Shown here one piece after another: positions 13,569 through 35,596 of a stretch of 64,000 nucleotides of DNA; positions within the stretch are counted from its first letter, which is position 1, and the number at the start of each line of letters is the position of its first letter. A program made the translations under genes and the position numbers. The notes below the pieces were generated by a model. It was given only the letters and a program-made list of their open reading frames with translations, searched no databases and was not told the origin of the DNA. The stretch is from NCBI GenBank assembly GCA_035084275.1, contig CM068769.1, positions 558,001 through 622,000 of the forward strand, read 5' to 3'. This stretch comes from Hydrolagus colliei (Eukaryota).

Positions 13569-14280
13569 TCTCTGGTTGGAACGTTACGAGCATTCAGCAA
13601 GGTTGACTGGAGTCTTTAGCTGTGCAGATGGTAATTATATTCTCGATCACGCCTTCACCCACAGCTCACTTCCGGCATGTTTGCTTGTGGTAAATTGTGC
13701 ATTCATTAGTAGACTTTCATCAGTGCTCATGCTTACTGCTGGGTAAACAGTGCCATGTGTATGGATGAAAGTAACCGTGCCCAGACTTTCTGCTTAGTCG
13801 AGCAGGGAATACAAGTCCATATCTGCACTTACCAAAGCCAATTTCTGGGTGAGCGTCACGACAGTTGGAACTCAAAACATTCCTATTGCTATAACCACCC
13901 CATTCGTCAGGGTTTTGGCTTGCAGGATTAATAGGAGCAGAGTGGAATGACTCCACTTTAACCGTGACTTGTCTGCTCTTCTAGGTTCTACTGATGAACC
14001 AGCCTGGTCTACCCTGTCATCCGCAGTTTCGTGAAATAATGCGAACTTGTCTACCTAAACAACATATCTACCACTGCAACTGGATTAGAGACCGTCGCAG
14101 ATAGATGGATAAATTCTGATATTCCGTTACAAAATTCAAGATAATCTGCCGTGAGAACTGCTTCCCTCCCATAAGTAGGAGAAGTGATTTTGCTCAGACT
14201 ATTGTGGACATTTACATAGTACAACGGCACCCTCTTTCGGCAGTAAAGCGCTACTGCGGTTTTTCATTTTTTATTGAGTA

Positions 14281-17200
14281 ACAACAACAACAACAAATTA
14301 CATTTATAAAGCGCATTTGACGTCGGTGGGACGTCCCAAGGCGCAGCACAGGAGGCGTGTGATCCGAGCTGGGAGGTGAGTGTACGCGGAGGGGTGAAAC
14401 ACGTAGGGGAGGTCGAAAAGTTCTGAGTGGAACAAAAGGCACGGTCGAAGAGGAAAGTCTTCAAACCGGCCTTGAAATTGGAAAGGGAAGAAACGAGACG
14501 GAGCGATTGAGGGATGGAATTCCATAAGCTGGGAGCGGTAAAACTGAAGGCCCGTCCTCTGATGGTGGGGCGGTTCGGGCGGGGGTTTTAGAGCAGGTCA
14601 AGTACTGCTGAACGGAGGGTCCGAGTGGGCTTGTAGCGGGAGAGTAGATTGGTTAAGTAGGGCGGGGCAAGGCCATGTAAGGCATTGAAGGTGAGGACGA
14701 GGATCTTGAATTCGATCCTCTGGAGGATGGGGAGCCAGGGGAGACGGGCTAGTGTGGGAGTTATATGGTCGCGAAAGCGGGTGCGGGATAATACACGGGC
14801 TGCAGAGATTTGGATAACGTGCAGCCTATGAATGGAGGAGATGGGGAGGCCGACGAGGAGAGCGTTTCCGTAGTCCAGCCTTGAGGTAGTGTATTTGTGC
14901 ACGAGTGTTTCGGTAGCGTGGGGGGTAAGATAATTGCGGAGCCTGGCAATATTGCGCAGGTGGAAATAAGCTGTGCCGGTCAAGGCACGGATGTGGGGGA
15001 GGAAGGAGAATTTTTGGTCGAACGTGATGCCGAGGTTCCTGACTGGCTTGATGAGGTGGAGAGTACAGCCTTGGATGTTGATGCTGGCAGCGCCCGATGT
15101 ACGGAGGAGCTGGCTTCTGCCAATCAGGAGGGCCGCGGTCTTACTCACGTTCAATTGCAGGAAGTTTTCCCTCGTCCAGGACTCGATGTCGGACAGACAC
15201 ACTGTCAGAAAATCGATGGCCTGGGGGTTGAGGTATGAGGCAGAAAGGTACAACTGGGTGTCGTCCGCATACATGTGGAAATTTACCCCATGTTTGCGGA
15301 TGGCATCGCCCAGAGGGAGCGTATAAATGGTGAAAAGGAGGCGGCCGAGGACAGAGCCCTGAGGGACGCCGTGAGAAACTGTGCGGAGGTTTGAGGAAAA
15401 ACACATTGGAAGATACAACGTGTAAACGGTGGGTGAAATAAAAATGGAACAATTCAAGGACTGTGCCTTGAAAGTTGAGGTGGGAGGAAAGACGTTGGAG
15501 GAGGATGGTGTGATCGACTGCGTCGAACGCAGCAGATAGGTCAAGGAGGACGAGGAGGCAAAGGGAGCCTGGTCACAGGCGGTTAGGATATCATTTGTAA
15601 CCTTAACTAGGGCAGTTTCTGTGCTGTGAGTGGGGCGGAAACCTGATTGGAGGGGTTCAAGGAGTGAGTGAGTTGAAAGGAAAGAGCGGAGCTGGGAGGC
15701 AACCACTCTTTCAAGGACCTTGGATAAAAACGGGAGGTGGGAAATGGGTCGATAGCTTGATGGTTGCGACGCATCAAGGGAGGGTTTCTTCAGGATAGGC
15801 GTGATGGTGGCGGTTTTAAGGGTGATAGCGACGGTACCTGAGGAGAGGGAATTGCTGATGATGTCAGAAATGAACGGGTCCAAAACGTGCAGCTGGGTGT
15901 GGAGTCGGGGGGGTGGATATGGGTTCCACTGAGCATGTGGTGGGTTTCATGGAGGTGATTATTTTTGTGATTAAAGACGGGTTAGTGGGGTTGAAAGTAT
16001 GAAATGGGGTGTGGGTGGGGGTTGATGAAACGGATGGAGGTGCGGAGGTGGAGAAGAGGTCGAGGGAGGAATCCGCGGAGCGGAGTTTCTCTATTTTGGA
16101 CTCGAGGAAGTCCAACATCTCCTCACAAAGTTCGTTTGAGGAGAGAATCTGCGAAGCGAGACAGGGGGGCGGAGGAGCTGGTTGGTCGTGGCGAAAAGGA
16201 GGCGGTGGTTGTCCTTCGCTTCCAGGATTATCGTGGAATATAAAGCTGATTTGGCGGTGGCTAGGTCGGAGCGGTAAAATTTTATGCGGTCCAGCCAGAT
16301 TTGCCGGTGGACCGTGAGGCCAGATTTGAGCCAGGTGAGTTCAGCTGCTCTCACTTGGCTTTTGAGGGAGCGGAGGTTAGTTGTGTACCACGTTGATTAT
16401 CGGGAGTGGGAGACGGTTCTGGAGGTGAGGGGGGCCAGGTGTCGAGGCTGGTGGAGAGGGTGTTATGGAGGGCGGTGGTGGCGGATGATCGGTCGGTGCA
16501 TAAAGAGTGCCACTTTGGGAGGAGGTCGGAGGTTTCGAGGGCAGAGTTGAAAGTTTGAGGGGGAATCTTCTTCCAGGGATGGTAGAAGATGGTGGTCGGT
16601 TTGGAAGTGGAGGGGGGATGGATAGAGTTGTTGAAAGAAATGAAAAAATGGTCTGAAATGGCCTTGTCGATGATGGTGACTCCAGAGACGTTGAGGCCTC
16701 GGGTGATCACCAGATCGAGCGGATGTTCGTGGGCGCGGGTGGCACTGTTAATGTGAAGGGAGAAGTTGAAAGACCAAAGTAAAGAGGAGAATTCAGAGGA
16801 AATGGGGTCAGGAGGGAGTGAAATGGAGGTTGACGTCGCCAAGAATGATGAGGCGATCAGAGGAAACGCAAAGGGAGGTTAAAAGTGAAGAGAAATCTGA
16901 AATGAAAGTGGGGGAGGGTTTGGGGGGGCCATGAACTAATAGGATTTTGAAGGAATTGTGGGAGGAGTGAGAGAGGGTGAACTGTTCTAAAGAGGGGAAA
17001 AAACCGGAGGAGTAGAGGGATAGGGCGAGGGATGAATTTGAAATGAGGGCCACACCACCGCCTCGACGGTTGGGTCGAGCGGCATGGACGAATTTGTAAT
17101 TGGGTGGTGTTGCATCTACGAGTGCGAAAGTGTCGCCTAGGGTAATCCCGGTCTCCGTCAGGGCCATGATGTCAACGTTCTCATCAAGAATGTGATCGTT

Positions 17201-18184
17201 GATGGCCAGGGTCTTGTTGCAGACAGAGCGGACATTTTGGAGGCCGATGCGGAAAAAGCAGTTGGCCGAGGGTTGAGAGGGGGGGGCTGGGATGGTCGGC
17301 GGGGAGGGGGGGGATCTGGATAAGGGAGGAGAGGTTGACCGCCCGGGTTTGTATCCGGTGGGGCTGGCGGTGATGGTGGGGGACAGGACACGTGGGGTGG
17401 CTGTTGTTGGACAGCCAGCGCCGAATGCCACGGTGAGCCCAACGGAGAACTCCAAAACTGGAACAAAGGGAAGCGGTGGGAGGGTCGAGCAGGGACAGTA
17501 GTCGACGAGGGCGAAGAGAAAGAAGGGTAGAGAAGGAATAACGGAGAGGGGGGATTGGGGTGAAAGAATTGAGGAGAGGAGGGAAGCTCGGGTCATGGCG
17601 GCAGCCATATTGCGCAAGCGGGAGATCAGGAGGGAGGGATCAATGGGGCGGCATCATCCAAAGCGATGTGAGGCCGTGACAGGGGGATGCAGCGGCGTTG
17701 CGGTCTGGTGCCTGGCCGGGACTGAGGCGGAAGCTGGGGCTGTGGGTTTCAGGGCCGGTTGCCGTGTCTGCGTGGGCCCGGGCCACGGGGCGACGAGTCA
17801 AGGCTGGAGCCGGGACCGGGGTAGAGAATCTCGGGGCTGTGTGCCTTGAAGCCGGTCATGGAACCGGCGATGCGGGTCACGGAGCTGTTGGTCGCGGGGC
17901 TGGAACCGGTGGCTGTGGGTCCTGGGTCTGTGAGTCTCGGGGCTGGAGCCGGGGCTGCGGGTCCTGGGGCTGTGGCTGGAGTCGGTGCTGTGGGTCCTGT
18001 GGCTGGGGCTGTGGCTGGGGCCGGGTCTGTGGGTCTCGGGGCTGGAGCCAGTTCGAGCAATCTCTGCTATGTGGACTTCTTAATCTCATGCTGCACAGAG
18101 ACAGCTGTGAGTCTCGGGGGACAGAAGGGACACATAGAGGACAGCCTAGACATGTCCTCTATGTGTCCCTCTCGCCGCCATTTT
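14281..18184 (-). mobile_element. L2 LINE, near full length, frameshifted
   Basis: APE domain (IGLQNVRS, DIMALTET, LGDVNLH) at 16.8-17.3 kb. RT (VPQGSVLG, YADDTQLY) in ORF 14588-15883. (GTT)n tail at 14281-14294. GC-rich repeats at the 5' end. Confidence 0.93.
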
Positions 18185-18185
18185 T

Positions 18186-18989
18186 AAAAGCTGCAGCATC
18201 ATGCCAGTTTGCCAAATAATGTACCAAGGATCTCTGTAGCCTGAGAAGTTTATTGACTCTGAATTTCTCCGGTACAAGAAAAATAATACATATGTCATCC
18301 ATAATATTGCGAAATTTACCGGAATCGCAAACAGTAAAATAATGGCTTTCTTTGGTTCTTCATCTCTGGATCACTGTCTCCCTCACCTCTATTCCTGTCA
18401 CCATCACTGTGTCCCCGCAATCTGCTGCGGGCTCGACTGGCCACCAGGTTGTGCCTGACAGTCAGGGCGTTCAACAGCAAAATCCCAACGAATGGGAGAA
18501 TTTGGGTTAAAACAAGGTCGAGGAGGTCAAACACATTCCATGGGATAAACGAGTAAACGCTTGCTTTGGCCACGCAAATCCACGATATGCTGTTAAATAT
18601 GAACTCTGGTTCATAGACAAAGTTCCAGGGAATGTTTAGCCCAATGAAGAACACACTGAGCCCCGCTATCACTGCAGCAGCTGTTTTTTCGGTGCAATAT
18701 TTAGTTTTCAGTTGTTGGCAGCAGATGGCGACATATCGATCGAAGGTTAAAGCTACAGTTAGCCAGACAGAGATTGCCGATGCTGCAGTTCTCAGCGCCT
18801 CTAGCAACGAGCAAACATGGGTGACGTTCACGAATGAATATGGGAAGTAGAAAGGAACAATGCGATAGAAAATCACCACAAAAATTACCATAATCAGATC
18901 AGGCACTGACATGGCCAGCAGAGAGTGGGAGACACATTTTGAAAGACCGCACCTCCCTCGGGACAGGATCAGAATGGCTACCATGTTAG
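18186..18989 (-). pseudogene. Rhodopsin-class orphan GPCR pseudogene, GPR139/GPR142-like
   Basis: Acceptor TCTCTGCAG|CT at 18990/18989, then NMVAILILSRGRCGLSKC...FDRYVAIC...PFVGILLLNALTVRH. A 1-nt deletion near 18345 shifts TM6 (restored: RKSIILLFAI...WMT). Ends at MLQLL in TM7 where the L2 begins. Confidence 0.85.
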
Positions 18990-19149
18990 CTGCAGAGAGG
19001 GTGAACGTAAAATGACCAGTTATAATAATCAATTTCTACAGTTCATTTTCTGCTGGTAGAGTAATATTTTCTGCTGCGCTTTCTGTTGGGTACTTTTCGC
19101 TTCTCACACATGAATTCACTATTTTTGCGACATCAAAGTGCGATGGAGA

Positions 19150-23875: not shown

Positions 23876-26299
23876 ATCTCCAGTTACGCACTTAATTCCC
23901 CAGAGTGTAAATTAAAGCAACTTCGCTCCATACCGACAAGCTCCCATCTTCATTTATTACAGAGAGTGTGGAGAAGTGCATGGGAAGAACCAAGGTTTTG
24001 TGATCCCAGTGTGCGTCCTGAGGTTCCTGTTGAAATGTAACAAACCAAAGCTGAAATGCTTCTCAATAGAACGAATCTATTTAGAATCTATTTCAATAAC
24101 CGTGTGTATTGTATTGTCACAGACGCACCTGACATAAAGCTCTAGAAGAGAAACGAAGTGATAAACAGTCGCATTGTTGCTGCTCGCTAAATACCTTTGC
24201 ACCAGAATATCATTATACATATTGCTTGTCGACGTAGAGATGTTTCAACATTACTTCCGTGACAGAACAGCAGTGCTTCATGTCACGACCTCCTGTGGCC
24301 TTGTTGGCTAGACTAAGCAAATTCCCTGCTGGTCGACCTTCGTAATTCCCCCCTCTGTAGGCTGCAGATAATCCAGAACTCTACAGCCCGTGTCCTCCAC
24401 GGTTCCCAACTCCGTGACCCCTTTTCCCCTATTCGTGCCCGACATCAATGGCTCCCCATCATTCAGAGGATCCAGTTCAAGATCCTGGTCCTCACATTTC
24501 ACGCAATCCACAACCTTGCCCCACCCTTTATCCGTGACCTCCTATCCCATTACCAAACTGCCCGTCCCCTCCGCTCAGCTGTCTCTGGCCTGTTCCACGT
24601 CCTCCGACCCTCCCGCCCAACGATTGGCAGGTGAGCCTTTAGTCACTCTGCTCCCAACCTCTGGAACACCATTGTGATGCCACTCCTCCTCGCCACCTCC
24701 CTGGCCACCTTCACGTATCTAACCATGGCTCTCCTCTTCGTACCCACAAGGGTTGCAATGCGCAACTGGCTGTTGAGTTTCATCAACAAACATACAGTTA
24801 GTTAATTTATGTTAATTATTCTGTTATTATTTTTGCATCATTACTGAGTGACGACGTTATTATAAATGGACCAAAAACAAGTACTACGATAAGAACGCCA
24901 TTTGAGAAAAAATATACATGAATCAATACTGAATAAAACTGAATCCCTTTGCACAACAACACAATCTCTCTCGAAAGTAATCTGTTTTTTAGTTTAATGA
25001 ACATATAATTTCATAGGTTGAAATGGCTAATTTTATCAGCGTGTTTTTCTTGGCGAGATTATTATCAGGTGTGTGTGTATATTTACGTGTATATATCTCT
25101 GTGTGTGCTTGCGTTCGTGGAATAGGAAAGCTTGTCCAAGGTTCCACCCTTAACTGCCTGGATTCGAACACATTTCTCACGCTTGTGAAGCGAGTGCTCT
25201 AACCACTGAGATACAGGATCTCCGCAGTGTGTGGAACAGATCCATATGAAGTGCTTTTGTGACACTCGAGTATGTGTTATATCAATGGTAAAGAGCATTA
25301 TTATTATTTCTATGACTTTCCCTCTTTCCATACATGAATGTATCCACCACTTTGGTTTGCAGTTGAGATATTGTCACATATTTCCACTGCGAGCGACAGC
25401 AGCAAAGTCAGTAATTGTCAAATATGTCATTAGTCATTACTAATATATGTGCAGCGATTAAAGCATTTGTCTGCCCGTGGGTGTTTTAATATCAGTGGTA
25501 TAATGTGACGGTAACACAGTGTGTGAAAGAATAATAATAACAAATCTTATTTATCAAAAGTATAAAATGTAAGGTTTATTAGTTTTAGTTTCACTCTTTC
25601 CTTACATGAACCACACTATCACTACTTCTGCTTCTGGTTGGAAATCAGTCACGAGTTTCCTCTGAGACACAGCAGCAGAGTCAACAAATTGTCAAACAGG
25701 TCAACAGTCATTCCAGGCCTCTGAGCTGAGATTAAACCTTTTCTCTCCTATTAGCAGGTTATTGTAAAGTGGGGGCAAGCTGACAGCAGTCTGATTCTAA
25801 CATGGCTTGTGTGATCGCATGTTTACTGTGGCTGTGCTGGATGCAGCCACAGTGACAGTCAACCACTTCAATGGACTTCCCGACGTGAGAGGCGCTCTGC
25901 ACACGTCATTGTGTTGTTCTTGATGTTGGGTTCGATACCAGGACAGTGCAACACATTGGGCAGATATCCATACTCCACAGGCCTCAGTTTAAAATACATC
26001 CATTAGGAAAACTGTTCTATTGAAATAGCGGTGTGCTATTCCTTGGGTATTTTTACTTTGATAAAAACTAAATATTACTTTACAACATTCGCCTTATTTA
26101 CGAAGTCTTCATAAGAGTAGATTCCAAATACAGTGAGAACTGTGTTTGGAATACACACAGGGCGAATCCTTCGGCAAATTTATTTAATCCACACGCCCAA
26201 TAGTAATCCGTCCCATACCAAAAAATGTATCACCAATCATAAATTGGTCATTTACATCCACTACTGTGTTTGGGGACGTTGCTGCGCGCAATTGGCTGC

Positions 26300-27122: not shown

Positions 27123-27505
27123 TGTTTCTCTCTCCCATAAACAAACAGTCAAATCACTTGACAATGTATTCTATGAAGCGCTGTGAGTCGCTTAGAGTAG
27201 TCGTGAAAAGCGATAAAGCGAATGCAAGTATTATTATCATTACTGCTGTTATTATCCACTTGTCTTAATTCCAACAAACATGTATCACAATCTTCTATCG
27301 GTTGATTAATCAACACATATAATACAGAGCTAGTGATGCATTTCCTTTTCTTTAATTGACTTGATATGAAGTAAATCAAGTGTAAGCTGTGGGGACAGAT
27401 AACTGATGGCTTGTTACATGGTGTCTCACTGCTCTTTACTGATTCCCAGCGTTTGGTTGTGATTAGGGTTATTGTACGAGGCTTCCTATGATGTGTATCA
27501 CTGTG

Positions 27506-27798
27506 GTGCAGACTGACTGCACAGTGATACATAGCGGAGTCTGGCAGCTGCAGGCTGGCGATGGATAAATAGCTGATTTTCTTGGCAGTGTCAAGAGAAG
27601 CAGAAATATGATCTCCAGTGGGGTTTCCTCCCTCTCCTGTAGTGTTTCTGTGGAGAAGGTATTTCGGTGCCTCACCAAGGGACTGACGGTACCAGGAGAC
27701 AATGAAATTCTGTCCGCAGAATCCTGAGTATTGGCATTGTAAATCCACTCTCTCTCCAGCAATAGACTTTGTTTCAGGCGGTGACTGGTGTATCGATC
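27506..27798 (-). CDS. Leaderless supporting V-delta segment of a NAR-TCR cassette
   Basis: Acceptor CCCTCCACGTAG|GA directly before SIHQSPPETK, with no convincing leader exon. LQCQYSGFCGQNFIVSWYRQ has an extra CDR1 Cys (27718-27716). Ends DSAMYHCAVSLH. RSS CACAGTG (27505-27499)/23/ACAATAACC. Confidence 0.85.
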
Positions 27799-29164
27799 CT
27801 ACGTGGAGGGAATCACAGGATAGTGAGCATTTCAATGGCATAGCGTTGTACAGCAATTAAGGAGGACATTAGGACAATTATTTATTTGCCAGCTGTTTGG
27901 GGCAATTGTCCAACTCATCCCACTTCCATTGTTGCCCCACATTCTTGACACATTTTGCTTCTGCATTACTCCACCGGTCCATTTCCACTTTAAAATGGAT
28001 AGTTTAACAGGCTTATGCAAGAATATCAGGCAGCGGATTGCAGATTATCATAACTTTGAAATTTATAACAAATTCTCTTTTTCTCCCGTTTGCTTCTTTT
28101 TTTAAAAAAACTTTAAAACACATGTCCTTTGATTACTGACCCACTGGCCAATGGAAACAGTTTCTATGCTCCCCTTTTATCAGATACTATTTTAACATTC
28201 ATTGCACTCATGAAAAGTTGATCTCTTTGTATGTGTCAATTGCTTCTTTGCTGTAACCATTCTATTAAATCGTCTTTCAATAATAACCAATACTTTAATA
28301 TCCTTCTTATCCTGTCAATAAAAGACACTTTAGATACACTTTTCACCTAAACCATAAAGTTACTCTAATAATAATACTTGCATTTGTTTTTGCGCTTTTC
28401 ATGTCCTCTAGCAGCCTCAAAAACCTTCAAAGAATATACTGTAAAGTGAATTGACTATATGTGAGTGGACGAAGCGCGGCACCCGAACAATAATAACACT
28501 ATTATTACTGTTTTAATATAGGCGATTTTCCCAATTTATCGACGTCGCAAAGCGCTTCACAGAATATACTGTAAATTGGAATGATTCTATATTTGTGGGA
28601 CAAACGCGGCAGCGAATTGCGCACAGCAGTGTTCCTCACAAACAGTCGTGGATTGGTTTGACCAATGTAGATTATTGTGGGATTTTTTCACGGATTATTA
28701 TTAGAAGTGTGGAGAAAGGTAACTTGCCCAAGGTTTCGCCCTATTCTTGCTGGATTCGAACACGGGTCTCACGCTTGTAAGTGATTGCGATATCCACTGA
28801 GCTATAATCCACAATAAAATAGTTTAACTGATTCTATACGGGTTTGCTGTTGTAGATTGCCCCCACTGAAGACCTGGTTGTCTGTGATCATGGGAATGTT
28901 TAGCAGAGAATCAGATGTCGGTGTACACAGTTAACTCCGTTGAATTAAAGTTGAGTAAAATGGAATTCCCCTCTGTAAATGTCGTGACATTAACATCGCT
29001 GCTGGAGGAGGTGAATTAAGTCTCTGGCTTGTTTCCAAAATCAGTTTTGTCTCAGTCTGTTAGCCTCTAAATGCAGTTTCATTTTTGCCAGAAGAAAACT
29101 GCTTTCCATAAAAAGTGTTAAATAATTGCTTAAATATGTTTGTTTCTTTGTTTGTGCATTTGTT

Positions 29165-29430
29165 TATTTATTTGTTTCCTTCTTTGATTCTTTCCTTGTT
29201 TCTATCCTTGTGTCTTTCCTTGTGTCTTTCCTTGTGTCTTTCCTCGTGTCTTTCCTCGTGTCTTTCCTCGTGTCTTTGCTCGTGTCTTTCCTAGTGCCTT
29301 TCCTCGTGCCTTTCCTCGTGCCTTTCCTCGTGCCTTTCCTTGTGTCTTTCCTTGTTCCTTTCCTTGTTTCTTTCCTCGTGCCTTTCCTTGTGTCTTTCCT
29401 TGTTTCTTTCCTTGTTTCTTTCCTTGTTCC
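29165..29430. repeat. 12-bp unit tandem repeat (TTTCCTYGTGYC)n
   Basis: About 20 degenerate copies running into the assembly gap. Confidence 0.9.
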
Positions 29431-29752
29431 NNNNNNNNNNNNNNNNNNNNNNNNNNNNNNNNNNNNNNNNNNNNNNNNNNNNNNNNNNNNNNNNNNNNNN
29501 NNNNNNNNNNNNNNNNNNNNNNNNNNNNNNNNNNNNNNNNNNNNNNNNNNNNNNNNNNNNNNNNNNNNNNNNNNNNNNNNNNNNNNNNNNNNNNNNNNNN
29601 NNNNNNNNNNNNNNNNNNNNNNNNNNNNNNNNNNNNNNNNNNNNNNNNNNNNNNNNNNNNNNNNNNNNNNNNNNNNNNNNNNNNNNNNNNNNNNNNNNNN
29701 NNNNNNNNNNNNNNNNNNNNNNNNNNNNNNNNNNNNNNNNNNNNNNNNNNNN
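29431..29752. other. Assembly gap (322 N)
   Basis: Run of N. Confidence 0.99.
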
Positions 29753-30420
29753 TCCAATCTATCTCTCCCCCTTTCCCCTTCATCTCTCTCTAATTTACCT
29801 GAGATGCTTCCTACACGTGTATTTGCTTACATATTGGCAACATACCGTGTTTTCGTGTTAATGAATAGTTAGTTGCTTGTTTCTGTAGAATATGATATAG
29901 TTCAGTTGGAACACTCAACTTCCATACAGAGGGGAAATTGGTGAACATTTCAAGTTATCGACCTCGCTTCAGACAATCCTTGGTTTGAATAGAACAATTT
30001 AAAGCATGTTTCATATTGGAGACATTTCATTGAGAGTTGACTTCTCGATGGATTCGCGGCAGAGAGTGTCTATAATATGCCACTGGAACTCACATATCCT
30101 GCGTCAATCATTTGTCTGAATTTACAGTTAAATTATGTATCTAGGCATGTTCCTTTGTAAACCATCTCCAGAAAAAGTGCAATGGCATAAAACCAAAAAG
30201 GGAGTAGATGCAGTTAATCAGAGGAAAAAGCCTATTAGCGGAAGCTGTCTAGTCTTTTAAAATCACAAGCATATCTTTTATTTTTCAAACGGCGGTCAAG
30301 GGGAATGTTGGCATGACACATTTGAAATTAACTAGGCAATTTGTTAAAATAAGCAGTGCATTTTAGAAATTCAAGTAACTCATGTTTCGTTTTATTTCAG
30401 TAGAATTTATTATCACTTAC

Positions 30421-30476
30421 TTTTTGTTACTGTGACATTGGTTCCTGATCCATCTAAGGTATATTCCTCCCAAGGA
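30421..30476 (-). CDS. NAR-TCR J segment
   Basis: PWEEYTLDGSGTNVTVTK+A, then a GTAAGT donor (phase 1). Preceded by RSS heptamer CACAGTA (30477-30483 on +)/23/GCAAAATAT. DGxGT matches IgNAR-type J. Splices in frame to the V at 27798 (TK-R-SIHQ). Confidence 0.88.
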
Positions 30477-30858
30477 CACAGTAACCCAGCGCTCGTAATA
30501 CAAGGCGCAAAATATATTCTACCTGATTATGATTGAATACTGCCACGAAGTAAATATAAATGATAACAAGTTAGTTGTTAGTTTCTACATTTCTACCACT
30601 TTTTCATCACAATACATGCATCGTGTCCAAATTTGGTTTGATTTCAATGTAATTTCCACCCATCATGAACAAATTGCCTCGCCCAGAAAACATATAACAG
30701 TAAATAATTCTAGAGTTGTCTGCTTCAAATGGCTAATCCAGAAAGCAAACTTCTGACAAATACAGCGCAATAAAACATGGCACAGCAATTAGTGTTGATC
30801 TGCAATGTAATTCCATGTAAACAGCCGCACGGTATTTGTGCTCATGGATTCCAATGTG

Positions 30859-30875
30859 GCTTTCCAAAAAGCCAG
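30859..30875 (-). CDS. NAR-TCR D segment (17 nt, 12-RSS on both sides)
   Basis: On +: GGTATTTGT-12-CAATGTG [GCTTTCCAAAAAGCCAG] CACAGTA-12-ACAAATATA (30831-30903). Minus-strand frames read LAFWK / WLFGK / GFLES. Confidence 0.88.
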
Positions 30876-31266
30876 CACAGTATTTGCTGTCAACACAAAT
30901 ATAGTATTTTGCAAAAACAGTGTAACACTATCTGGTCAAGTACAATTTATCAATAAATGATATCACGTGTACAAATATTTTGAAGATATTCCTATTCAGA
31001 TTTGATATGTCGTCTATTCGATATACATAAACTGCGATATATGCCAATTGCACTCACATTCAACGTCTTTTAACACTACCTACATTTTCCTAAGTGTTCA
31101 CCAATAATGCTTGTTAATCGAAGAGAATGTTATGAAACACAATTCACATCTCAACACACTGGAAAATGTGCATTGAATTCATTGACAACGTCACATTGAC
31201 TGTGTGTTGTCTTTGAATTGACGAAGAAGCTTTTTGTATTGTTGGAAGCCTGGATGCAGCATTGTG

Positions 31267-31971
31267 TTGTACCACAGATATTGAGATACACATCTGTAGG
31301 TAGCGCTGTCTGCTACTTGCAAATCATTAATTTCCAGCGTGGATGTCTTTGTTCCCACTTTGATAACATCAAACCGTCTTTCGCGAGGGATGGACATCCA
31401 ATCTCCACCATTTGGAAACTGCCTTTGAAGTGCCAATCTAATGGATCTGTACTTCCCACGATTCCCTTCTGCAAACACGCAGTTGATGGTCAAAGAATCA
31501 CATTCTTCGTTGGTAACAGAAGTTGGTGTCTGTGTTAGGGTCTGACTGAAAACATCTGAAACATACACAACATGACGTCAGGTTAATACAGGCACAACTT
31601 TGACCTGTACCATTAGCAGCAAATCCTGATGCTTGGCATGAGTTGAATTGATTTCAATTAATACAATAATAATATAATTATAATATCATGTTTAATTAAT
31701 AAAATACAAGCAGAACAGTTTAATCGATAGCAATCGGCTGCTACTTTTCGCCCGCAAAATAAAAATAAGTACGGTCACTTCGACATACAATATACACTGT
31801 GAAGCGCTTTAAGACGTTTCATCGATGTGACAAGCCTCTGTATCAAAGCAAGCAATAATGTAAATTATTGTAAGGCACAGGGTGACGATGGTATTCACTC
31901 GTGCCGTGTAATTGGAACAAAAACTCACGTTGTAAGAAGTGGAAGGCGATGGAGACAGAGATGAGATGCAT
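31267..31971 (-). CDS. NAR-TCR (IgNAR-like) V segment with leader
   Basis: Leader 31971-31929 gives MHLISVSIAFHFLQ(H)VFS. V exon 31555-31267 QTLTQTPTSVTNEECDSLTINCVF...LEINDLQVADSATYRC aligns by eye to IgNAR V FR1/FR3, with short FR2 and no true CDR2. Extra FR1 Cys at 31502-31500. RSS CACAATG/22/ACAAAAAGC. Confidence 0.9.
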
Positions 31972-34900: not shown

Positions 34901-35596
34901 TATATCACAACCTATTTTGCTGTGAAGTAACCCAACTGTGTATACATTGGGGAGCGTGACAGCCAGATAGCACTGTTCAAGTGCGGATGGGTTCCAGATA
35001 CCCTTGTGAATGGAACCAACAACTAGAACACAGTACACTTCTTGCAGCTTCCTTCACTATGTAACGTAGTCCAGGGGCGCTGGGCTATGAGGGATTTTGT
35101 ATTCCAGACAAAAGTTGGCTTCTCAGTTGGGGTGGAGTGCTGGGGTAGTGCCGATGGAATGGTGACTAACTCCACGGTCAAGGAGGAGAATTATAACATG
35201 ATAATCTCATTTTTCTGGAAAATTTCACATCGGGCAGAGTTCCCAGTTTGCTGGACAGTTAGTGTTTCGAACCACAGTTTGGGCTCGGAATCGGGAAGGT
35301 TGAATGGCAGTGGGAGTTGGAGGTTGACGAGAAGCACATTCGATATAGAGTGACTCAGATGGGTCTTGAGGGAAGTGGAAGAGAGAGAGGTCGAGACAAA
35401 CGGAGAGCAATATAGAGCTCCATGGAGTGGGGTCGGAGAATCAGCCGACCATCAATGATTTCTTTGGTTTATTGGATCATTTAATCGATTCCCTGCGAAT
35501 CCTCCAGGCCTGACTAAGATTCCACATCCTTTCCAACAAGTTGTACAAAATGAAAGCAGTTTCTGTTCGAGCCCTGCAGTGTAATCAACCACTGTG

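Follow-up and report, generated by a model that had tools for sequence, protein, structure and literature searches.

The 64,000-nucleotide stretch of DNA analysed here (contig CM068769.1, positions 558,001 to 622,000 of the forward strand; hereafter the window, whose own coordinates are used throughout) carries on its minus strand a compact set of antigen receptor segments: a leader exon, an antibody-like V exon (V1), a single D, a J with a splice donor and, beyond a long intron, a second V exon of T-cell receptor (TCR) delta type that has no leader (V2). This set is very probably a germline, unrearranged and intact cassette of NAR-TcR, the new antigen receptor (NAR) type of TCR, lying inside the V-gene array of a cartilaginous-fish TCR alpha/delta locus, most likely that of a holocephalan (chimaera). 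The elements had been proposed in a first-pass annotation, and leader, V, D, J, intron and leaderless V were all found on the minus strand where that annotation had placed them.

The leader exon (31929-31971, 43 nt) opens with an ATG at 31971, encodes MHLISVSIAFHFLQ plus one nucleotide and ends at a phase-1 donor, GTGAGT, at 31928, from where a GT…AG intron of 373 nt (31556-31928) leads to the V1 exon (31267-31555). V1 thus has a split leader, Met-initiated, hydrophobic and 14 residues long, placed 373 nt upstream, and translation across the splice reads MHLISVSIAFHFLQ|HVFSQTLTQTPTSVTNEECDSLTINCVF…TYRCVSQYLWY. The V1 exon is an intact open reading frame (ORF), open throughout, and encodes HVFSQTLTQTPTSVTNEECDSLTINCVFAEGNRGKYRSIRLALQRQFPNGGDWMSIPRERRFDVIKVGTKTSTLEINDLQVADSATYRCVSQYLWY. 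It holds both Cys23 and Cys104, carries a further cysteine in the a-b loop (NEECDSLTINC) and has no tryptophan in framework region 2 (FR2), where its LALQRQ aligns to the YWYRKK of shark IgNAR V domains (VNARs) with their "WYRK" tryptophan. The missing tryptophan was considered as a mark of a defective V1 and dismissed, its absence being a published hallmark that is common to all homologues.

Downstream of V1 stands a recombination signal sequence (RSS) made of the heptamer CACAATG, a 22-nt spacer and the nonamer ACAAAAAGC (31229-31266). The single D core (30859-30875) is 17 nt long, CTGGCTTTTTGGAAAGC, free of stops in all three frames and flanked on both sides by 12-RSSs, TATATTTGT / 12 / TACTGTG on its 5' side (30876-30903) and CACATTG / 12 / ACAAATACC on its 3' side (30831-30858). 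The J (30421-30476), encoding PWEEYTLDGSGTNVTVTK plus one nucleotide, is preceded by a 23-RSS (ATATTTTGC / 23 / TACTGTG, 30477-30515) whose heptamer keeps the CAC triplet, and it ends at a phase-1 donor, GTAAGT, at 30420. From the V1 heptamer to the D 5' heptamer there are 384 bp, and from the D 3' heptamer to the J heptamer 375 bp, close to the approximate 390 and 380 bp of the first-pass annotation; the RSS types satisfy the 12/23 rule at each joining step, V1 to D and D to J. A window-wide RSS scan returned 33 hits on both strands, against 10.6 +/- 4 in shuffled sequence. On the minus strand its high-scoring 22/23-RSSs coincided with V exon 3' ends; of good 12-RSSs in that orientation there was one, the D 3' signal.

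Between J and V2 extends an intron of 2,622 nt (27799-30420), 322 N included, that contains a minisatellite, an assembly gap and an element resembling a transfer RNA (tRNA). The V2 exon (27506-27798) opens at an acceptor, …ccctccacgtag, and encodes, after a junction arginine, SIHQSPPETKSIAGERVDLQCQYSGFCGQNFIVSWYRQ…DSAMYHCAVSLH, beginning SIHQSPPE and ending YHCAVSLH, with the canonical tryptophan (SWYRQ) and a cysteine in complementarity-determining region 1 (CDR1). It is followed by its own 23-RSS (CACAGTG / 23 / ACAATAACC, 27467-27505), in which the heptamer matches at 7/7 and the nonamer at 8/9 positions. The J-to-V2 splice is predicted from the exon phases to be in frame, in line with what had been claimed at first pass: the donor A and the acceptor GA together form the codon AGA (R), so that the junction reads …TVTK-R-SIHQSPP….

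The NAR-TcR V is characterized by a leader, an a-b loop cysteine and the lack of the WYRK tryptophan, and the supporting TcR-delta V by the lack of a leader and a conserved CDR1 cysteine (PMC1845163); the defining features of the system were drawn from PMC1845163, PMC12227049, PMC3457774 and PMC3149040. The published hallmarks are present in the window and the same layout occurs in seven elasmobranch loci, which sustains the NAR-TCR delta architecture put forward in the first-pass annotation. Pfam assigns V1 to V-set. Among PDB entries its 30 best matches are shark VNARs without exception (E 1e-10 to 1e-5), and ordinary light chains enter the list from about 3e-5. In a maximum-likelihood tree V1 lies within the NAR clade with support of 96/96, apart from the conventional Vs of the window; the grouping with ordinary TRAV/TRDV that had been named beforehand as speaking against the assignment was seen neither in the tree nor among those 30 matches. 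In the same tree neither IgNAR proper (98/99) nor the elasmobranch NAR-TcR clade (95/95) includes V1, whose closest neighbours are the NAR-TcR Vs of Callorhinchus milii. An exhaustive HMMER scan gave two-V models of NAR-TcR type as the best full-domain matches of V1, with a true IgNAR heavy chain of Triakis scoring much lower. Among the V exons of the window, V1 is the single one of NAR type (tblastn of V1 and V2 against the window).

Since the best solved-structure matches of V1 are IgNAR V domains, an IgNAR (antibody) gene cluster has to be weighed as an alternative to a TCR element. IgNAR belongs to the same V-domain family and likewise has a single-domain V without CDR2, with the motifs SLTINCV…INDL·V·DS·TYRC. 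However, IgNAR keeps the FR2 tryptophan, has no a-b loop cysteine, uses three D segments and carries IgNAR constant exons after J, whereas the window has a V1 without this tryptophan and outside the IgNAR clade, one D, and a V exon after J with no IgNAR constant exons, all within a TCR V array. The 2007 survey assembly of the elephant shark, incomplete by its authors' own account, yielded no IgNAR (PMC1845163). Taken together, these features leave an antibody cluster next to no chance. TCR-mu of marsupials and monotremes likewise forms a three-domain chain, in which an antibody-like N-terminal V, unpaired, sits over a supporting V (PMC3457774), but it is convergent rather than homologous, having a VH-related V, a separate locus (the TRM cluster of mammals) and, in marsupials, a germline-joined supporting V. 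V1 of the window is of NAR type, and the relatives found are those of cartilaginous fish.

The C. milii NAR-TcR (PMC1845163) shares with the window the NAR V leader, the a-b loop cysteine, the absence of the WYRK tryptophan and the leaderless V-delta with a CDR1 cysteine. The V1 leader is homologous to the C. milii leaders MSLLGVSISFLFLQ / MSLLCVSISFLFLQ (MHLISVSIAFHFLQ in the window versus MSLL[GC]VSISFLFLQ), as is the FR2-C' motif (FPNGGDWMSIPRERRF versus FPNERDWKPIPREGRF). The two nevertheless differ, there being no near-identical C. milii entry: identities reach at most about 50-54% for V1, 76% for V2 and 68% for a conventional V. With C. milii giving the best matches throughout, yet at such identities, the window would derive from a holocephalan, as an unannotated block of C. 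milii paralogues or, more probably, as DNA of another chimaera. The elasmobranch NAR-TcR has a germline grammar and geometry like those of the window, but here V1 is only 39-43% identical and falls outside the elasmobranch clade, the junction residue is R in the window versus D, and FR2 reads LALQRQ versus FFRQ.

V2 matches Pfam V-set with E 1.5e-13 and is 66-76% identical to the V2-type models of C. milii, of which there are at least eight and which translate the identical RSS as …HHSDTHHRKPRTITLIT…. With the second V of shark two-V models it shares 46-56% identity, and with the remaining Vs of the window 25-34%. The CDR1 cysteine (SGFCGQN) has its counterpart in the SG·C of shark second Vs and of most C. 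milii copies. Two C. milii V2-type copies, P0004 and P0011, have lost this cysteine (SGLYGQ and SGFWGQ), a sign that they may have degenerated or may serve without a NAR V.

It may be asked whether V2 is an ordinary TRDV or TRAV that merely happens to lie beside the NAR V-D-J, its leader being hidden in the gap. About 322 bp remain unread 1.6 kb upstream of V2, and the C. milii model P0004 does show a Met-initiated N-terminus on a V2-type exon, although that N-terminus resembles translated intron. Other Vs of the window serve here as positive controls: in most of them 4-8 leader-tail residues follow the acceptor, and for several a hydrophobic exon that opens with Met and closes with a GTAAG-type phase-1 donor lies some 100-600 bp upstream. 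The V2 acceptor, by contrast, lies one codon before the mature N-terminus, a position that a leader hidden in the 322 unread bases would not fit, and no leader-like ORF with a phase-1 donor was found in the sequenced part of the intron (322 N unread). The CDR1 cysteine is typical of supporting Vs, and the leaderless layout recurs in mapped elasmobranch loci. Both acceptor position and intron search agree that V2 has no leader of its own, the reverse of which had been named at first pass as telling against the assignment, and a coincidental neighbour with a concealed leader is very improbable.

The comparison with relatives covered seven elasmobranch genomic loci, those of six sharks from three orders and of a sawfish, annotated by script and by eye; with the window they make eight cassettes. 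In each of the seven, a V with a 22/23-RSS is followed by one 12-D-12, then by a J that ends at a phase-1 donor, and finally by a second V exon; wherever this exon was mapped it is leaderless, and where examined it carries a 23-RSS. The spacer of the V RSS is 22 nt in seven of the eight loci, the window among them, and 23 nt in Chiloscyllium; that of the J RSS is 22-24 nt in the seven elasmobranch loci. Across the eight cassettes the V heptamer lies 373-385 bp from D (384 in the window), the D core measures 15-17 nt (17 in the window) and D lies 369-385 bp from the J heptamer (375 in the window), while the leader intron is 147-150 nt in the seven elasmobranch loci and 373 nt in the window. The homologous J-to-V2 intron spans 2.4-2.8 kb in the four sharks measured and an estimated 1.9 kb or so in Pristis, compared with 2,622 bp in the window. 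Chiloscyllium and Heterodontus share the D 3' nonamer of the window, ACAAATACC, exactly, and Hemiscyllium, Rhincodon and Mustelus depart from it by one base; the J donor is conserved in sharks. Between the window and the two hemiscylliids, Hemiscyllium and Chiloscyllium, only the signals and J can be aligned.

The protein models tell the same story. The HMMER scan retrieved many proteins in which a V1-type domain is followed, about 115 residues on, by a V2-type domain; such two-V RefSeq/Ensembl models come from C. milii, Cetorhinus, Chiloscyllium, Hemiscyllium, Mustelus, Rhincodon, Pristis, Heterodontus and Scyliorhinus. The a-b loop cysteine (·EC·[ST][LF]), the absence of the FR2 tryptophan and a direct J-to-V2 junction were seen in all ten independent two-V models examined, which come from C. 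milii and eight elasmobranchs, the FR2 of these homologues reading FFRQ, FFKQ or FHMQ. The J motif DGSGT·VT·T is present in most two-V models and loci, with YGAGT in Pristis and EGSGT in Scyliorhinus, and the CDR1 cysteine of the second V is kept in all two-V models except one from C. milii. At its C-terminal end the full-length Mustelus model has a constant region with a transmembrane segment; the nine best PDB matches of this region, transmembrane segment included, are all TCR delta chains or delta constant regions (E about 1e-10), one of them labelled 'TRA@ protein'.

The cassette is embedded among other V segments. The window holds at least 12 V-type exons with 23-RSSs, all on the minus strand and on both sides of the cassette (tblastn with V1 and V2), at least 11 of them conventional TCR Vs from which V1 stands apart; it is therefore assigned to a TCR alpha/delta V array. 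The best database matches of the neighbouring V exons are C. milii V-set proteins, with a neighbouring conventional V (Vd) at most 68% identical to C. milii.

Several observations weigh against reading this set as an intact NAR-TcR cassette. The J nonamer matches the consensus at only 5/9 positions, below the threshold of the RSS scan, and the D 5' nonamer at 6/9. TCR delta D, J and C (TRDD, TRDJ, TRDC) were not found within the window, and because they would lie outside it, attachment to C-delta rests on the homologues. Alignment of the promoter region with the shark loci revealed no convincing conserved motif. None of the proteins searched exceeds 76% identity to V2 or about 54% to V1. The deep nodes of the V2 tree do not resolve chimaera and shark supporting Vs as one clade, so the placement of V2 with shark supporting Vs draws on pairwise identity and shared motifs rather than on the tree. 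Finally, the J-to-V2 linkage spans an assembly gap, across which physical continuity is only inferred.

The first of these points bear on whether the cassette works. A copy of the right architecture could be silent or recently inactivated, a structural pseudogene that rearranges poorly or not at all owing to a weak J RSS or a defective promoter. Apart from the two imperfect nonamers and a promoter not conserved with sharks, such a reading draws on at least four visibly defective neighbouring V segments in the window, which indicate that decay is common in the array, and on the C. milii V2 paralogues without the CDR1 cysteine. On the other hand, each of the three coding pieces is open, and the structural cysteines, the hallmark residues, the two splice sites and the CAC triplets of the heptamers are all preserved. 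The copy also resembles those of sharks in its D 3' nonamer and in the distances between its segments, and degenerate nonamers are common among the J segments of functional genes. A silent copy is therefore considered unlikely, while keeping a real if small share of the probability, and function of the cassette is plausible as judged from its sequence. The first-pass statement that the copy is functional "since every signal is intact" holds insofar as the signals and ORFs are present, but it was overstated in view of the 5/9 J nonamer and the assembly gap in the intron.

The gap (29431-29752, 322 N, of estimated length) lies between J and V2, entirely within their intron, and cannot affect the frame, which is set by the exon phases alone. 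It does open the way to a scaffolding error, whereby V1-D-J and V2 would come from different paralogous cassettes or would not be adjacent; a multi-copy family, with at least eight V2-type models in C. milii, favours such mis-joins. Yet strand and order are as expected on either side of the gap. A 12-bp minisatellite (29160-29428, TTGTTTCTTTCC on the plus strand, about 22 copies, 89% matches) abuts the gap and is probably its cause, and the purine fraction of the coding strand is 0.88 and 0.71 in the gap flanks versus 0.57 in the whole intron, as would fit one unresolved low-complexity array. At 2,622 bp as scaffolded, the intron also falls in the size range of five elasmobranch loci (1.9-2.8 kb). 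Continuity is favoured by the minisatellite running up to the gap, the purine-rich flanks and this intron length, and a mis-join, which appears a slim prospect, would if it occurred between paralogues still leave the architecture the same. A tRNA-like element in the same intron (28752-28804, minus strand) shows A-box and B-box motifs, TAGCTCAGTGG…GTTCGAATCC, and occurs as a single copy in the window. Neither ARAGORN nor Rfam called it as a true tRNA; it probably represents the head of a short interspersed nuclear element (SINE).

The way in which an intact NAR-TcR cassette would be used can be outlined from published work (PMC12227049, PMC3457774, PMC6795676) and from the homologues, the window itself providing the signals, 12/23 compatibility, frames, phases and family membership. 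In a thymocyte of the gamma-delta lineage, RAG would join the single D, through its two 12-RSSs, to V1 (22/23-RSS) on one side and to the dedicated J (23-RSS) on the other, yielding an N-terminal antibody-like single V domain, while V2 (23-RSS) would independently rearrange to a distant TCR-delta D/J outside the window. Transcription would start upstream of the V1 leader, and the phase-1 donor after J would be spliced to the leaderless V2 acceptor across the predicted arginine junction. The expected product is one chain composed of leader, NAR V, supporting V-delta and C-delta. The a-b loop cysteine of V1 and the CDR1 cysteine of V2 are the pair proposed in the literature for a putative inter-domain disulfide. 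V2 would pair with a TCR-gamma V, leaving V1 free as a single-domain binding site.

Automatic annotation has dealt poorly with this gene family. None of the homologous RefSeq/Ensembl models looked up is named NAR-TcR; they appear instead under misleading names such as 'immunoglobulin kappa light chain-like', 'TCR alpha chain MC.7.G5-like', 'immunoglobulin superfamily member 2-like' or 'uncharacterized'. When the Hemiscyllium and Chiloscyllium models were mapped to genomic DNA, both were seen to skip D, V being joined to J without it, and in the Hemiscyllium model the translation runs on into part of the V RSS. The CDR3s of these RefSeq two-V models were considered as real junctions and rejected as artefacts of D omission or RSS read-through; they therefore provide no evidence of rearrangement or expression. 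At the level of the family, the expectation that such cassettes escape ORF-based annotation is thus supported by homologous models that are mislabelled and, in the two mapped cases, mis-spliced.

NAR-TcR was reportedly described in the nurse shark by Criscitiello et al. in 2006 (PNAS 103:5036), and this kind of gene is said to have been known since then. The system is already well described, and the cassette leaves existing knowledge of how the receptor works unchanged; only the constancy of the V-D and D-J spacing is a possible addition to the literature. Segments in shark immunoglobulin clusters are already known to lie close together. In the eight cassettes the leader intron differs 2.5-fold (373 vs ~148 nt) while the V-D and D-J lengths are near constant. 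Spacing that stays near constant (about 3%) across the deepest living split among cartilaginous fish while the sequence itself is not conserved would suggest that short-range V(D)J recombination is under a physical constraint. It is tempting to speculate, as a tentative and rather doubtful proposal, that the geometry of the NAR-TcR mini-cluster is itself under selection and, should the window be chimaerid, that NAR-TcR extends beyond Callorhinchus within Holocephali. If so, the constraint might amount to a spacing of about two nucleosome repeats or reflect a looping or synapsis requirement. A chimaerid origin would extend NAR-TcR beyond Callorhinchus despite a ratfish Southern blot that had not detected it (PMC1845163).

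The broader interest lies in NAR-TcR being one of the few natural cases of an antibody-like single domain on a T-cell receptor, and in its central place in the debate on whether the NAR V originated as a TCR or an immunoglobulin element. A holocephalan germline cassette, resolved to the base and set beside the elasmobranch ones, offers a clean guide for annotating a gene whose name and splicing automatic pipelines get wrong, together with evidence that segment spacing, besides the signals, has been kept since the chimaera-shark split; V1 adds a single-domain V scaffold representing the family's most divergent branch.

Among the conventional V segments of the window, five look defective (11375-11079, 62383-62111, 51397-51146, 59170-58889 and about 35643-35599). 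Two have in-frame stops, one combines Cys23->Arg with FR2 Trp->Cys, one is without Cys23, and one is a short V remnant that retains a good 23-RSS at 35596. An isolated perfect heptamer at 25515-25521 (CACAGTG/CACTGTG) has nonamer-like A/T-rich sequence 12 nt away on one side and 24 nt away on the other (25515-25542); considered as a local D for V2, it was rejected as a chance occurrence, there being no second heptamer. A decayed non-long-terminal-repeat (non-LTR) retrotransposon (14588-17617, minus strand) lies between the cassette and the next V, with fragmented endonuclease (Exo_endo_phos) and reverse transcriptase (RVT_1) ORFs. A GC-rich minisatellite of 33-43-bp units occupies 17859-18049, within a region of high GC content (14000-18000, 0.52-0.58) and strong GC skew. 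Also inside the V array, a 238-aa ORF (18316-19032, minus strand) matches the rhodopsin family of seven-transmembrane receptors (7tm_1, E 3e-13), carries the DRY-type motif FDRYVAIC and looks truncated.

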